64,000 bases of DNA from Octopus sinensis (lineage: Eukaryota): contig NC_042997.1 in assembly GCF_006345805.1 (NCBI RefSeq), forward strand, positions 70,308,001 through 70,372,000. The letters run 5' to 3'. Numbering within the stretch: position 1 is the stretch's first letter; each line of letters starts with the position of its first letter. Below, piece by piece: positions 2,824 through 59,365 of this stretch. The notes under the pieces were generated by a model, which searched no databases, had not been told where the DNA came from, and saw only the letters and a list, made by a program, of their open reading frames with translations. The position numbers and the translations under genes were made by a program.

Positions 2824-3051
2824 ACAATCAAGGAACGGCCATAATAGGCCATTCACCCACTAGAAATAACAGCCAAAGCTTCAACCAAAGCTGTTATTTC
2901 TAGTGGGTGAATGGCCTATTATGGCCGTTCCTTGATTGTTGATGTTGAACTTAAAAATGGTCTATGACTATTTAATTTTTTCCCACTAGGCCGCTGGTGG
3001 CAAAAAAATTCTACAAAATTTTTTTTTTGCCACCCTATATTGATTAATTAT
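2824..3051 (+). mobile_element. Short (TA)n-inserted element with 5' fold-back (50-bp arms 2824-2873 / 2890-2939)
   Basis: Perfect 50-bp inverted repeat with a 16-nt loop. Body contains GCTGTTATTTCTAG and ends CACCCTATATTGATTAATTAT followed by (AT)n. (TA)n on both sides. Confidence 0.75.
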
Positions 3052-3235
3052 ATATATATATATATATTATATATATAATATATATATATATATATATTAT
3101 ATATATATATATATATATACATACATACATATATATATATATATATATATATATATATATATATATATATATATATATATATATATATATATATATATAT
3201 ATATATATATATATATTATATATATATATATATAT

Positions 3236-3540
3236 GGCGGCGCAATGGTCCAGTGGTTAGGGCAGCGGACTCGCGGTCGTAGGATCGCGGTTTCGATTCC
3301 CAGACCGGGCGTTGTGAGTGTTTATTGAACAAAAACACCTAAAAGCTCCACGAGGCTCCGGCAGGGGGTGGTGATCCCTGCTATACTATTTCACCACCCT
3401 TTCTCCTACTATTTCTTCTGTTGGCCTGCTCGCTTAGCCAGCGGGGTGGCCTCATTCGGAGGCGAAAACAATGCGAACGCATTGTGACCAGCTATGTGTA
3501 ACAACATCTGATGGTCTGGTCGGTCACGTGATCACGTGAT
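3236..3540 (+). mobile_element. tRNA-derived SINE
   Basis: Head GGCGGCGCAATGGTCCAGTGGTTAG...GGTTTCGATTCCC (A/B-box-like), unrelated body, CACGTGAT tail, inserted in (TA)n. Confidence 0.8.
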
Positions 3541-3789
3541 ATATATATATATATATATATATATATACAAGGAAAAGAGAGTAAATATATGTTTGCTCTT
3601 GTTTCATTAATTGAGTATGACTTCTCAGCACCACCACTGACAGAGTACATTCACGTAGGCACCAAACTACCTAGTAACTAACAGCACACAAACTCGCTTG
3701 TAATATAGAGCTGGATATTTACAGCTTAATATTACCAGAAGATGGTCAGAGATGGTTTACATTTTACGTGACTGAAAACCACACCTTAA

Positions 3790-4130
3790 TCTAGCAAGGG
3801 ACAAGTTTTTCCACACAGGTGATATGAAAATGCTTGATTTTGTAGTAAAGACTGCAAGAAATTGCAGCATTTCATGTGCATTGTCAACCCAGATCTGCTT
3901 ATGCAGATCTTACTACAAAAACTACAAGGTAGTTCATAAGAGTGTGCAGTTTAGGAGAGAAGGATCATCGGCCAAAAGCAAACCCTTTCATGTCTCTTTA
4001 TTTTCTTTATCAGTGCATTTTTTCTACTTATCGTCTTCAAACAGGGTAGCATCACCTCGGAATTTCTTCTCCATTTTGGTCGACCCATTATATCACTCTC
4101 CCAGTTTGCATGCATCATTTTGAAACTCTT
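3790..4130 (-). mobile_element. RTE-type LINE 3' ORF fragment with terminal zinc-finger-like motif
   Basis: Minus frames give WESDIMGRPKWRR...KIKRHER, then LPCSFCSKICISRSGLTMHMK (CxxC...H), like RTE ORF C-termini; frameshifted. Confidence 0.55.
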
Positions 4131-55332: not shown

Positions 55333-57784
55333 ATATATATATATATATATATGTGTGTGTGTGTGTGTGTGTGTGTGTGTGTGTGTGTGTGTAAGTGTGT
55401 GTGAGTGTGTGTGAGTGTGTGTGTTGTGTGTCTGTGTTTGTCCCCCTAGCATTGCTTGACAACCGATGCTGGTGTGTTTACGTCCCCGTTACTTAGCGGT
55501 TCGGCAAAAAAGAGACCGATAGAATAAGTACTGGGCTTACAAAGAATAAGTCCCGGGGTCGATTTGCTCGACTAAAGACGGTGCCCCAGCATGGCCGCAG
55601 TCAAATGACTGAAACAAGTAAAAGAGTAAAAGAGTAAAAGAGATATATATATATATTAAAATTATAAGTAAATGAAAGAATGGAGTTGAACGACTAGTTA
55701 ACAAATATCCTTTATTCTCGACATATGTTTCGAAGGCTGCATATTCCTAATTCCGAAGGAATAAGGAGTACATTATGCAGATTTCTCATCAGAAAAATCA
55801 AGGAACTTATGTCGACCATGGGCTCATTGAGAGCGGTCAGCTAAAAGTTTTTTGTGCATTTTGAGGTCGACATAAGTTCCTTGATTTTCCTGATGAGAAA
55901 TCTGCATAATGTACTCCTTATTCCTTCGGAATTAGGAATATGCAGCCTTCGAAACATATGTCGAGAATAAAGGATATTTGTTAACTAGTCGTTCAACTCC
56001 ATTCTTTCATTTACTTATAATTTTAAAATAAACATACAAATTTCCGCACGAAGACACGTAGTCTATGCCCTAGGGACGTAGCTTCAACCGTGTTCTTTCT
56101 GATGTGAATTTGCTACCCAGGTATCGGTTATCTTTCGAATTATCCTTAATAAGATAATTCATTCAATTACATATATATATATATATATATGTGTGTGTGT
56201 GTGTGTGTGTGTGTGTGTGTGTGTGTGTGTGTAAGTGTGTGTGAGTGTGTGTGAGTGTGTGTGTGTGTGTGTGAGAGAGAGAGAGTGTGTGTATGCGTGT
56301 GTGTGTGCGTGTGTGCACGCACGTGTAGATTTTGTAGGTACCAACAGAAAAAAAAATTTGTATTGTAAATTTTGCACCGTCAACCTTCCTCTACGCTTCC
56401 CCATGGACGTACACTGCAAATTTGGACATCAATATTACAATTGTATTTCAGCATTAGAACATAAAAACCAGTTTGAATCTATTCCAAGAAATCTTTTTAA
56501 GCGCGAGAGAAATAAAAGATTCGACAGTAGTATGATTAGAAAGATTGAAAAAAAAGTTATTCCAACCTAGATTGCTCATTATATATGATCATGGAAATGT
56601 ATCAAACAAACGAGAGTCTAAAGTATATATGTGATCTTTAGAACCTTTTCTTTGCTTAAGATGTAGTAAAGTAGGTAGAGACTTCGTTAAAATCGCTGTG
56701 TTCAACTGGAGAGACTCCAACTATTTTGCCCCCCAATTAGGTTTGTCAAATAAATTTACAGCAAAAGATAAGAATTGTGTCACTTATTTGTTTGATTATT
56801 CGTTCATGTCTTGTCTTAAAATATATCACAAATGGCCTTCTAGAATATTCAAGGAACATTCTGAACATTAAAACACATGAACACAGAAATATTTATATAG
56901 ATGTACACGTAAATACTCACACACATGCATACACACAAACATACACGCACACACACACACATACATATATGGTGGTTGTCGACTCCTTATGTCGAGTTTG
57001 TCCACCACCCCTGCCTATACCTCAGAGCCATAATGGCATCTGGTGTGGCTTTTTAAACCAGACAATGTTCTGAAAAGACACCCACATAGGTTGGACCTCT
57101 GATTTGGATCACCAAATTAAAAATAGAATGTACCACACGGGCGAAAATATATAGAGAAAAGGATTTGAAAATGCAGAGGTCTTTTAAAGATGTCTATTGA
57201 CTTGATCGGTTTCACTTTTTTTAAATGCTTTCAAATTTAAAGTGCAAGGCTTTCTGTAGTATATGTGGTGTTAAAAATTAGTTAAAACAGATACGGTGAT
57301 AGAGATTTTGACATTGATAAGTAGATGTAAAATAATAGAATCTTTGACAATGATAAGAAAACGTTAAGGGAAGCTCTGTGTTTAAACAGTTTACAAAATA
57401 GTATTCAAAATAGGTCGTAAAATACGTTCATAAATGTTTATAGGTTCATCAGAAATCATAATTGCTTATAAAGTTTTAGAGGAATGACCAACCTCTTTTT
57501 CTTCTTCTCCAGTCTTGTATATGTGTTTTGCAATATAATTATTGTTAGTGAGGTCTTTTTGAGGAGAGAGATTCCTCTTTAAAGGAATGTCAGCATCCAA
57601 GCGTGCTCCGGCTTTATCGTATATATCGATGAACTTTCTGGAATCCTTCCTTTACGTGGTAGAATTAGTGGTTATCATTTATTAGGCACCAGCATTATAC
57701 ACATTTTGGAGTTCCACTATTTTGTATAGATGTTTACTTCTCATCGAAATATTTGGGTAGAGTTATAGAAATATATTGCGTCAA

Positions 57785-58722
57785 CTCAAAAATAATGCAA
57801 TTTTTTCAATTGTATGAACTAAAAGTCGGAGCAGAACGGGGTAAACTACTTGAATCAACTTGCTATAAAAACAGGTAATAATTTTAGCATGTACATATTG
57901 TTTGAGAAAGTTATGAAGAATGCAGTTCGATTTTAACAGTTATTTTTTCAAAGCTATAATGGAATTGACAAAGGAGTATATTCGGCATATTTTGCATTAT
58001 GTGTTCAATAAAGGCAACAACACAAGGGATAGTGCGAGGAATATTAATACAATATATGGATATCGGACAATAGAAAACGCGCCTTTTTTAAAACAAATAA
58101 TGACAGGTGGTGAGAAATGGATTATATACCAAAATGTTCAGAGAAAGCGATCCTGGAGTAAGCGACATGAGCCACCCCTAGCCACCCCAAACGTCTTGCT
58201 TTGTGTATGGTGGGATTGGAAAGGAATTCTGTACTATGAGCTTCTCTCAAGTAACCACACAATTAATTCTGAGAAATACTGCACACTGGACGAGTTAAAA
58301 TCAGCAATTCAAGAGAAACGTCCATAATTGGCCAACAGGAAGGGCGTTGTTTTCCAATGCAAGACCGCACGTTTCTTTGGGAACCAGACAAAAATTGCTG
58401 CAGCTCGGCTGGGATGTGTTACCCCACCCTCCATATTCACCAGGTATTGCTCTTTCGGATTTCCACTTATTCAGGTATCTGCAGAATAGTCTTAGTGGTA
58501 AAAATTTCAATTACTTGGATGAGATTAAAAGATACCTTGATGAATTCTTTGCAATGAAACCACCTCAATTCTGGGAAGAGGGCATTTTCAAGTGAAAGGA
58601 AAGATGGAGACGCATTGTGCAACAAAATGGTTCATATTTGGTTGATTAAAAATGGAATGGCAATTATTTATTGACCTTTTTCTTTCCTTTAAAAATCGGC
58701 ATGAACTTTCCGGACAACCCAA
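57785..58722 (+). mobile_element. Mariner transposon, internally deleted; transposase pseudogene at about 57959-58649
   Basis: MELTKEYIRH, FLKQIMTGGEKW (catalytic D lost), LCVWWDWKGILYYELL, ARPH, VLPHPPYSPGIALSDFHLF; 3' TIR ...CCGGACAACCCAA|TA. Confidence 0.9.
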
Positions 58723-58884
58723 TATATATATATATATATATATATATATATATATATACATACACACACATATATACATATACATACATATATATATATA
58801 TATATATATATATATATATATATATATATATATATATATATAATATATATATATATGTATATATATATATATACATATATATAT

Positions 58885-59365
58885 ATAATTTCAACAATTG
58901 AGGGTAAAATTAATTAATTAATCAATTTCACCAAGTATTCAGTATGCAAAGGGACCATTTAAGGCGAATTCAAATTATTACATTATATAAAAGGGCTTAG
59001 TAAAATAAATTACTTTGCCGCATACTGAACTCATTAGAAATAGCAGCCAAAAAAAACTTTTCTAAAACTATTTCTAATACTTAAAGAAAACCTCTCTCAT
59101 ATAGTGTTTGCTCAATTCAACTCACGAAAGTATGGGGGTAGAGACATTAAAAAATCAAATGCAAAGGTTATTTGAAATAACCTTTGCATTTGATTTTTTA
59201 ATGTCTCTACCCCCATACTTTCGTGAGTTGAATTGAGCAAACACTATATGAGAGAGGTTTTCTTTAAGTATTAGAAATAGTTTTAGAAAAGTTTTTTTTG
59301 GCTGCTGTTTCTAATGAGTTCAGTATGCGGCAAAGTAATTTATTTTACTAAGCCCTTTTATATAA
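58885..59365 (-). mobile_element. (TA)n-inserted element with a near-perfect 191-bp-arm palindrome centred on 59174
   Basis: 58983-59173 and 59175-59365 are reverse complements with 1 mismatch seen; same family as 24859-26006. Confidence 0.88.

Follow-up and report, generated by a model that had tools for sequence, protein, structure and literature searches.

Short hammerhead-bearing elements with inverted 5' arms in (TA)n tracts of Octopus sinensis and their probable Penelope-like origin

The stretch of Octopus sinensis DNA considered here (RefSeq assembly GCF_006345805.1, contig NC_042997.1, forward-strand positions 70,308,001 to 70,372,000; hereafter the window, 64,000 nucleotides in its entirety, with positions counted from its first letter) is 65% A+T, contains 78 (TA)n tracts, and carries a group of short non-coding elements that sit within these tracts and mostly begin with an inverted copy of part of their own sequence (Table 1). 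A preliminary description of the window reported five such fold-back loci (L1 to L5), each reading (TA)n, inverted arm, optional spacer, body, 3' tail and (TA)n, and the terminal arm and the (TA)n on both sides were confirmed in each of them. A sixth (TA)n-embedded hammerhead element, E6, had been missed; it has no inverted arm, and brings the number of independent small-element insertions in the window to six, a near-identical twin of L4 being excluded from this count. (TA)n abuts both sides of all six, and likewise of a degenerate Penelope-like element (PLE) remnant. When the window was split at each (TA)n tract and segments of 100-3000 bp were kept (n = 49), terminal fold-backs were found in L1 to L5 and the L4 twin only. 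Taking the strand that carries the hammerhead as RNA sense (plus for L2 and L4, minus for L3 and L5) and orienting L1 by its similarity to the other elements, an inverted arm is present in five of the six independent insertions and lies at the 5' end in 5/5 (p ~0.03), L1 conforming to this rule if so oriented.

Table 1. Positions of the small elements, their predicted hammerheads and the PLE remnant in the window.
Feature	Position	Strand	Description
PLE remnant	552-2023	-	degenerate, between two (TA)n tracts; reverse transcriptase motifs and Cys-rich linker preceding endonuclease
L1	2824-3051	+	arm 2824-2873, spacer 2874-2889, body 2890-3051
E6	23177-23557	+	1.07 units; terminal direct repeat 24 nt (23177-23200 / 23527-23550)
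E6 hammerhead	23339-23383	+	canonical minimal type I; predicted cleavage after 23377
L2 5' inverted arm	23572-24016	+	445 nt; reverse complement of 24324-24767, 98.9%
L2 arm hammerhead copy	23771-23850	-	
L2 body	24017-24830	+	1.4 tandem units
L2 hammerhead	24489-24568	+	CUGAUGA..GAAAC-GUAC-GUC; predicted cleavage after 24568
L3 body	24859-25850	-	1.84 tandem units of 540 nt (24859-25398, 25399-25850)
L3 degenerate hammerheads	25150-25193, 25694-25736	-	CCGAUGA..GAAAC-GUAC-GUU; predicted cleavage after 25150 and 25694 (minus strand)
L3 5' inverted arm	about 25847-26006	-	reverse complement of about 25502-25664; outer end CCCTTTTATA
L4	54820-55332	+	arm 54820-54979 (~160 nt), spacer 54980-55026 (47 nt), body 55027-55332
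L4 arm hammerhead copy	54882-54954	-	
L4 hammerhead	55052-55124	+	CUGAUGAG..CGAAAC-AUAU-GUC; predicted cleavage after 55124
L4 twin	55656-56170	+	99.8% identical to L4; inside 837-bp tandem duplication
L5	58885-59365	-	body 58885-59175 (291 nt); arm 59175-59365; ~90% identical to L3

The elements have units of 350-580 nt, and L1, L4 and L5 comprise one unit or less. In L1 the two 50-nt arms (2824-2873 and 2890-2939) are perfect, with a spacer of 16 nt and a tail of 112 nt, and the centre of the fold-back is the loop of a conserved hairpin (2862-2901). In L2 a 307-nt spacer separates the arm from its source copy; the body is built of blocks A (24017-24248), B (24249-24323), C (24324-24598) and A' (24599-24830), carries conserved hairpins at 24097-24130 and 24679-24712 and terminates in ..ATTGATAATTG. 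The equivalent hairpins of L3, whose 3' end in RNA sense is position 24859, lie at 25011-25047 and 25552-25589; its spacer is 186 nt and its inner arm junction shows a 2-nt AT microhomology. L5 is a palindrome of two 191-nt arms (58983-59173 and 59175-59365) about a single unpaired base, 59174. The five loci and E6 hold only open reading frames (ORFs) of at most 79 amino acids, none resembling a reverse transcriptase (RT). E6, L2 and L3 stand back to back at 23067-26036, the first two in plus and the third in minus orientation, separated by 16 and 32 bp of (TA)n; in what was seemingly one original tract, this arrangement reflects either very strong targeting or the addition of TA repeats at each integration.

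Hammerhead motifs are heavily over-represented. The pattern CUGANGA..GAAAC-N4-GUH occurs seven times in the window against 0.08 occurrences expected from composition-matched sequence, an expectation that falls to 0.013 for a palindromic N4. All window hammerheads are of type I, helix III being a single base pair closed by a palindromic loop (GUAC, AUAU or UCGA). They match the minimal kind of metazoans and PLEs that is thought to act as a dimer (PMC4209133); on their sequence they are predicted ribozymes. The three loci previously said to carry them, L2, L3 and L4, do so, the L3 copies being degenerate, and the motif scan found none in L1. In a 121-nt search, the only Rfam search to recover it, the E6 hammerhead matches the Hammerhead_1 model over its full length at 32.2 bits (E 8e-7), against a gathering score of 34, and L2 and L4 have canonical cores with a long helix II, helices I and II appearing in their minimum-energy folds. 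Two consecutive hammerhead-bearing units occur only in L3, both degenerate, the other elements having a single sense hammerhead. Targeted Rfam scans of L2-L3 and L4 gave no hammerhead at E<=10, none is present among the 150 matches listed of 387 in a whole-window scan (E<=10), and no Rfam family of any kind reaches its gathering score within the window. At relaxed thresholds the microsatellites and fold-backs (e.g. 54841-55166, 2844-2919) give hundreds of matches below the gathering score, to mir-297, mir-466, MIR821, mir-561 and mir-192, and all sub-threshold matches to the fold-back elements are to microRNA precursor families; these matches are spurious, being caused by the microsatellites and the fold-back hairpins, and could mislead annotation.

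At least four families are represented. L2 is homologous to L3/L5, L1 is tentatively placed with them, and L4 and E6 each form a family of their own. Between the hammerhead cleavage site and the 3' end, L2 and L3/L5 can be aligned with ~66% identity, and have in common the hairpin AGAAAUAGC..GCUAUUUCU, a long-range stem with a nested hairpin in which several compensatory changes are seen (effectively between two lineages), and the 3' motif ATTGAT(T)AAT. The 3' module can be written as the hairpin AGAAATAGC..GCTATTTCT followed by ATTGATWAATT; L1 carries the 3' arm of this hairpin (12/14 nt) and terminates in ..ATTGATTAATT, a likeness in sequence on which we tentatively place it with L2, L3 and L5. 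Compared between families, L1 and L2 end at ATTGAT(T)AATT and L3 and L5 some 35 nt further on. Within the E6 family, the 3' ends of E6 and its O. bimaculoides homologue lie ~48 nt apart.

The outer ends of the arms fall 50, 66, 62 and 65 nt past the conserved hairpin in L1, L2, L3 and L5, respectively, and in L2, L3 and L5 this position corresponds to a predicted unpaired AU-rich loop within a 3' domain that shows compensatory base changes. Measured to the distal 3' end, the distance is 102 nt in L3, 98 nt in L5 and 63 nt plus ~35 nt of tail in L2, and an unrelated element of Argonauta hians (L015, described below) gives ~98 nt. The earlier observation that four of five arms stop at AT-rich positions holds, the exception being the outer end of L1, as does that of a shared stopping site in two copies of one family, L3 and L5 both ending at CCCTTTTATA. 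The inner junctions and spacers of these two differ (186 vs 1 nt), which, in copies of one family, indicates that the arm is made anew at each insertion; both arms run through an internal TATATAT without stopping. Among the six small armed elements (the five in the window plus L015) the spacers measure 1, 16, 27, 47, 186 and 307 nt, and every arm is a subset of its own body, from whose source copy it has diverged by ~1-2.5% in the window elements and by ~9% in L015. The L5 body begins no more than 1-2 nt from where the hammerhead is predicted to cleave, and finishes at the 3' end that it has in common with L3; a random truncation this near the site has a chance of ~1%, although this coincidence was noticed post hoc.

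PLEs themselves occupy the same kind of site. The remnant in the window has no inverted arm; its RT fragment is 75% identical in amino-acid sequence to an O. bimaculoides protein, its best matches being from O. bimaculoides and A. hians, and homologues of its C-terminal part carry RVT_1 and GIY-YIG according to precomputed Pfam matches, whilst a Pfam search of our own recognised neither the window RT fragment nor the GIY-YIG domain of the O. bimaculoides copy. Endonuclease-bearing (EN+) PLEs thus inhabit the (TA)n tracts of this genome. For comparison we used two loci of A. hians (L015 and L016), two of O. bimaculoides (L012 and L013) and an ENA contig (L014), the last showing no similarity to the window. 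L016 (5991-12618), a PLE with an ORF, is flanked by (TA)n at both ends, contains a 2.2-kb head-to-head inverted copy (96.7%) and has a 35-nt tail on the inverted copy only. L015 (3273-4249) is a small (TA)n-associated element of 1.9 units of 356 nt with an arm of ~210 nt and a spacer of 27 nt; its sequence is unrelated to the window elements, its 3' flank is not (TA)n, and no hammerhead motif was found in it. L012 is an E6 homologue in which the hammerhead stems co-vary and the 3' end lies in (TA)n, the 5' side falling in an assembly gap. L013 is a PLE with a 237-nt inverted arm adjoining (TA)n; this arm abuts a 10-N scaffold gap, and its endpoint was not used as an example of an internal ending. 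Exact-protein look-ups of ORFs spanning the element junctions gave no match in a protein collection that apparently lacks this genome. Two 22-mer metagenome matches to the elements, with no similarity in their flanks, were dismissed as chance, and nine viral-contig matches to the hairpin pattern showed no similarity to the elements by BLAST.

The surroundings of the elements contain further repeats. L4 lies next to a SINE-like (short interspersed nuclear element) repeat at 54390-54805, in which a tRNA-like head and a tail of GTAAAAGAG repeats flank an internal (TA)/(TG)n tract; similar text occurs near 12305, 21475, 36769 and 47871, the copies are ~73% identical to O. bimaculoides sequence, and ARAGORN calls no tRNA in the window. 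The 837-bp tandem duplication that generated the L4 twin (54563-56240, 99.8%) consists of the SINE 3' half, (TA)7, L4 and (TA)n(TG)n, and is bounded by (TG)n; because it repeats the SINE 3' half and the (TA)n(TG)n flank along with L4, the twin is not an independent insertion, and the duplication is either a real unequal exchange or a duplication in the assembly. Two other inverted repeats were noted. One, of 161 nt (41207-41367 / 42333-42493, 99% complementary), encloses ~1 kb, has inner ends that abut (TA)n and is of unexplained origin; it shows no hammerhead and no similarity to the five loci. The other, of 175 nt (50750-50924 / 51257-51431, 79% complementary), has overlapping ORFs of 133-146 amino acids on both strands between its arms. 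A mariner-type transposase remnant is present at 57920-58592 (homologues PF01359; closest relatives ~70% identical or less), and ORF fragments at 16908-17451 (minus strand) and 28416-29950 read like the RT and C-terminal region of a long interspersed nuclear element (LINE), with no significant Pfam match.

Taken together, the insertions are probably short non-coding hammerhead retroelements of the animal retrozyme type without long terminal repeats (non-LTR), mobilised into (TA)n by the RT and endonuclease of a PLE, an assessment that concerns the PLE-type origin and does not extend to the copy-back step discussed below. Characteristic of PLEs are partial tandems, truncation at the 5' end and, at that end, an inverted copy that is itself 5'-truncated, along with a tail of 30-40 bp and a bias towards (TA)n (PMC8557442); their hammerheads are published (PMC4209133), and animal retrozymes have been proposed to be non-autonomous PLEs (PMC7229834; bioRxiv 10.64898/2026.07.22.740005). 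As regards origin, the proposal in the preliminary description that a PLE RT acts at (TA)n is borne out by the insertion hallmarks, which are those of Penelope-type non-autonomous insertions. Its suggestion of an undescribed retroelement class does not stand, because partial tandems, the inverted 5' copy, the tail, the (TA)n bias and the hammerheads are all published for PLEs (PMC8557442, PMC4209133); the octopod elements are new members of the retrozyme or non-autonomous PLE kind. The start or stop of the arm at an internal conserved site is one deviation from the PLE pattern that is possibly informative, and the outer ends at a homologous AU-rich loop, the L5 centre by the predicted cleavage site and the L1 centre on a hairpin conserved across families are details that do add something.

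Several observations weigh against this interpretation. No RT or endonuclease ORF lies inside any of the five loci, and a search for the autonomous partner in the 3' untranslated regions (UTRs) of the window PLE remnant and of one O. bimaculoides PLE gave no significant similarity to any element. The arms stop 63-144 nt short of the 3' terminus, whereas canonical PLE inverted copies, including that of L016, reach it. No Rfam hammerhead model attains its gathering score anywhere in the window, the L3 core has a C at U4 (CCGAUGA) and a weak helix II, and the L2 hammerhead has an A.C mismatch at positions 10.1-11.1. The membership of L1 depends on a 12/14-nt hairpin arm and an 11-nt 3' motif, and the sample is small, at six independent window insertions and three loci of other species.

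In the mechanism we propose, a PLE protein would cut the AT-rich target and start cDNA at a fixed internal site on the RNA, the ~35-nt offset between the 3' ends of L1/L2 and L3/L5 corresponding to the PLE tail, for which two internal RT start sites account (PMC11167929). The template would be RNA in multimeric or circular form or, for L5, a monomer cleaved by the hammerhead. The earlier idea that the RT copies a ribozyme-processed RNA is thus retained for L5, the body of which begins 1-2 nt from the predicted cleavage site, and not for L2, L3, L4 and E6, where the hammerhead is internal to the copy and the templates must have been uncleaved, multimeric or circular. In L5, cDNA begun at the internal start site on a ribozyme-cleaved monomer would have run off the 5' end of the RNA. 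The arm would be generated in the same integration event as the body: by copy-back, the RT would part from the RNA where it runs off the end (L5), at a hairpin (L1) or at some other point, and would copy its own cDNA back towards the target, halting in the AU-rich single-stranded loop ~100 nt before the 3' end, and the new end would join (TA)n by microhomology. Completion by TA microhomology, as had been suggested, is plausible at the junctions. We also put forward, as a tentative and rather doubtful extension, that the arms read out how the PLE integration complex is built, that their outer ends mark a second, internal site of starting or stopping, set in a conserved AU-rich loop at a fixed distance of ~100 nt from where the RT begins, and that L5 indicates the use of hammerhead-cleaved monomer templates in vivo.

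The switch of template onto the RT's own cDNA, which the preliminary description took as the source of the arm, is one of two live options. In the other, two-strand priming, a dimeric PLE protein would cut both strands; the body would be primed from the bottom strand at the canonical internal start site, a second, independent cDNA would be primed by the 3' end of the top-strand (TA)n on the accessible AU-rich loop ~100 nt upstream, and the two cDNA ends would then be joined. We regard this as a real possibility, if not the expected one, and as nearly as likely as copy-back. In vitro, a purified PLE protein cuts an AT-rich target on both strands and extends each of them (PMC11167929). In L016 the 35-nt tail of the inverted copy is absent from the body, so the body's cDNA cannot have served as template for that copy. 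The location of arm outer ends at one homologous unpaired AU-rich loop in L2, L3 and L5, together with the passage of the L3 and L5 arms through TATATAT, also speaks for this route. However, the confinement of each arm to its body and the skew of the spacers towards short lengths (1, 16, 27 and 47 nt in 4/6 small elements) are not predicted by independent terminations, and the fold-back of L1 is centred exactly on a natural hairpin and that of L5 on an RNA end. Sequence variants common to the arm and the tandem units did not separate the two routes. On this balance copy-back is slightly favoured for the origin of the arms, six insertions being too few to decide.

Explanations that dispense with a PLE, or with an integration event, fare less well. 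An origin at the DNA level after insertion, in which long (TA)n tracts would form hairpins or cruciforms, break or hold up replication forks, and adjacent sequence would be duplicated in inverted orientation through fold-back priming or template switching, is suggested by the self-complementarity of the 78 (TA)n tracts, by the AT-rich arm ends and by the unrelated 161-nt inverted repeat that also borders (TA)n; it is nevertheless unlikely, given that terminal fold-backs occur in 0/42 other inter-(TA)n segments against 5/6 element insertions, that the arm is invariably 5', that outer ends coincide at a homologous site across families and that the centre of L5 lies at the predicted hammerhead cleavage site. 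A retroelement class independent of PLEs, with a fold-back replication cycle of its own, might be inferred from the internal arm endpoints, so unlike canonical PLE inverted copies, from the failure of the comparison of two PLE 3' UTRs to identify a partner, and from the silence of the retrozyme literature on arms and (TA)n, yet every other structural feature is a published PLE hallmark and octopods do have PLEs with (TA)n flanks and inverted copies, which makes such a class very unlikely. Tracts of (TA)n and palindromes are hard to sequence, and repeats often differ by 1-nt indels, a pattern also seen in long-read consensus sequence; an assembly or chimeric-read artefact is all the same highly improbable for arms that are short, contig-internal and always 5' in RNA sense, that end exactly at microsatellite borders and have diverged from their source copies, and whose layout recurs at five window loci and in the A. 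hians assembly, the O. bimaculoides arm abutting a scaffold gap. Least probable of all are DNA transposons with terminal inverted repeats, of the Foldback type or the type of miniature inverted-repeat transposable elements (MITEs), or AT-targeting Helitron-like elements. Long inverted repeats, small size, the lack of an ORF and TA/AT-rich targets are features of Tc1/mariner-derived MITEs and Helitrons, but here the inverted duplication affects one end only, the other being a unique tail, the arm is copied from internal sequence and its inner junction differs between L3 and L5, the copies include partial tandems and 5' truncations, hammerheads are present, and the 3' ends are defined and the 5' ends variable, as in retroelements.

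PLE integration is still largely not understood, and the main grounds for the idea that PLEs mobilise animal retrozymes are that the two occur together and are similar in sequence. In small, young insertions such as these every junction is kept; a census of them could tell copy-back from two-strand priming, and could show RT start sites and the use of ribozyme-cleaved RNA templates. Were the reading of the arms as a record of the integration complex, and of L5 as the product of a cleaved template, true, it would provide the first structural link, in the form of an insertion signature, between animal retrozymes and the PLE machinery, and would define a fold-back-prone subtype. More speculatively, the fold-backs, if transcribed, would give long perfect double-stranded RNA hairpins, which could matter in an animal group that edits its RNA heavily. 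In genome annotation such elements will probably be taken for MITEs, microRNA-like hairpins or unknown repeats; the 2026 O. vulgaris repeat annotation does not describe them.

Amongst known systems, the closest likeness is to EN+ PLEs of the microsatellite-targeting Neptune/Naiad type, with which the window elements have in common AT-rich or (TA)n targets, partial tandems (pseudo-LTR), truncation and an inverted copy at the 5' end, a repeated unit with a minimal type I hammerhead and perhaps, on the comparison between families, alternative 3' ends ~35 nt apart (the tail). They differ from autonomous PLEs in having no RT/GIY-YIG ORF and units of only 350-580 nt, and from PLEs generally in an inverted arm that ends before the 3' terminus; Naiads, the clade reported to favour (TA)n, are moreover without the canonical hammerheads that the window elements carry. 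Metazoan non-LTR retrozymes (Cervera & de la Pena 2020; Li et al. 2026 preprint) are similarly short, AT-rich and non-coding, with tandem-repeatable units and a type I hammerhead with weak helix III and palindromic loop. The retrozyme papers (PMC7229834; bioRxiv 10.64898/2026.07.22.740005), which deal with tandem arrays and circular RNAs, say nothing of inverted arms or of microsatellites as targets, whereas in number of units the window copies mostly comprise 1-2 units. An active retrozyme copy has at least two consecutive hammerhead units; in the window only L3 has two, in degenerate form.

Two further systems bear comparison with the arms. The 5' inversions of the L1 retrotransposon (not to be confused with our locus of that name) reportedly arise by twin priming (Ostertag & Kazazian 2001); there too a 5' segment is inverted relative to the 3' body and arises during target-primed reverse transcription, but the inverted segment lies upstream of the direct one on the RNA, whereas the window arm duplicates sequence of the body, giving a fold-back and not an inversion. 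Snap-back or copy-back products of polymerases, such as self-primed cDNA hairpins and copy-back defective viral genomes, arise where a template ends or forms a hairpin, and pair almost perfectly about a very short loop; in this they resemble L5 (1 nt) and L1 (16 nt). Unlike such products, the fold-backs of the window are integrated in the chromosome, and end at a defined internal site that is joined to a microsatellite.

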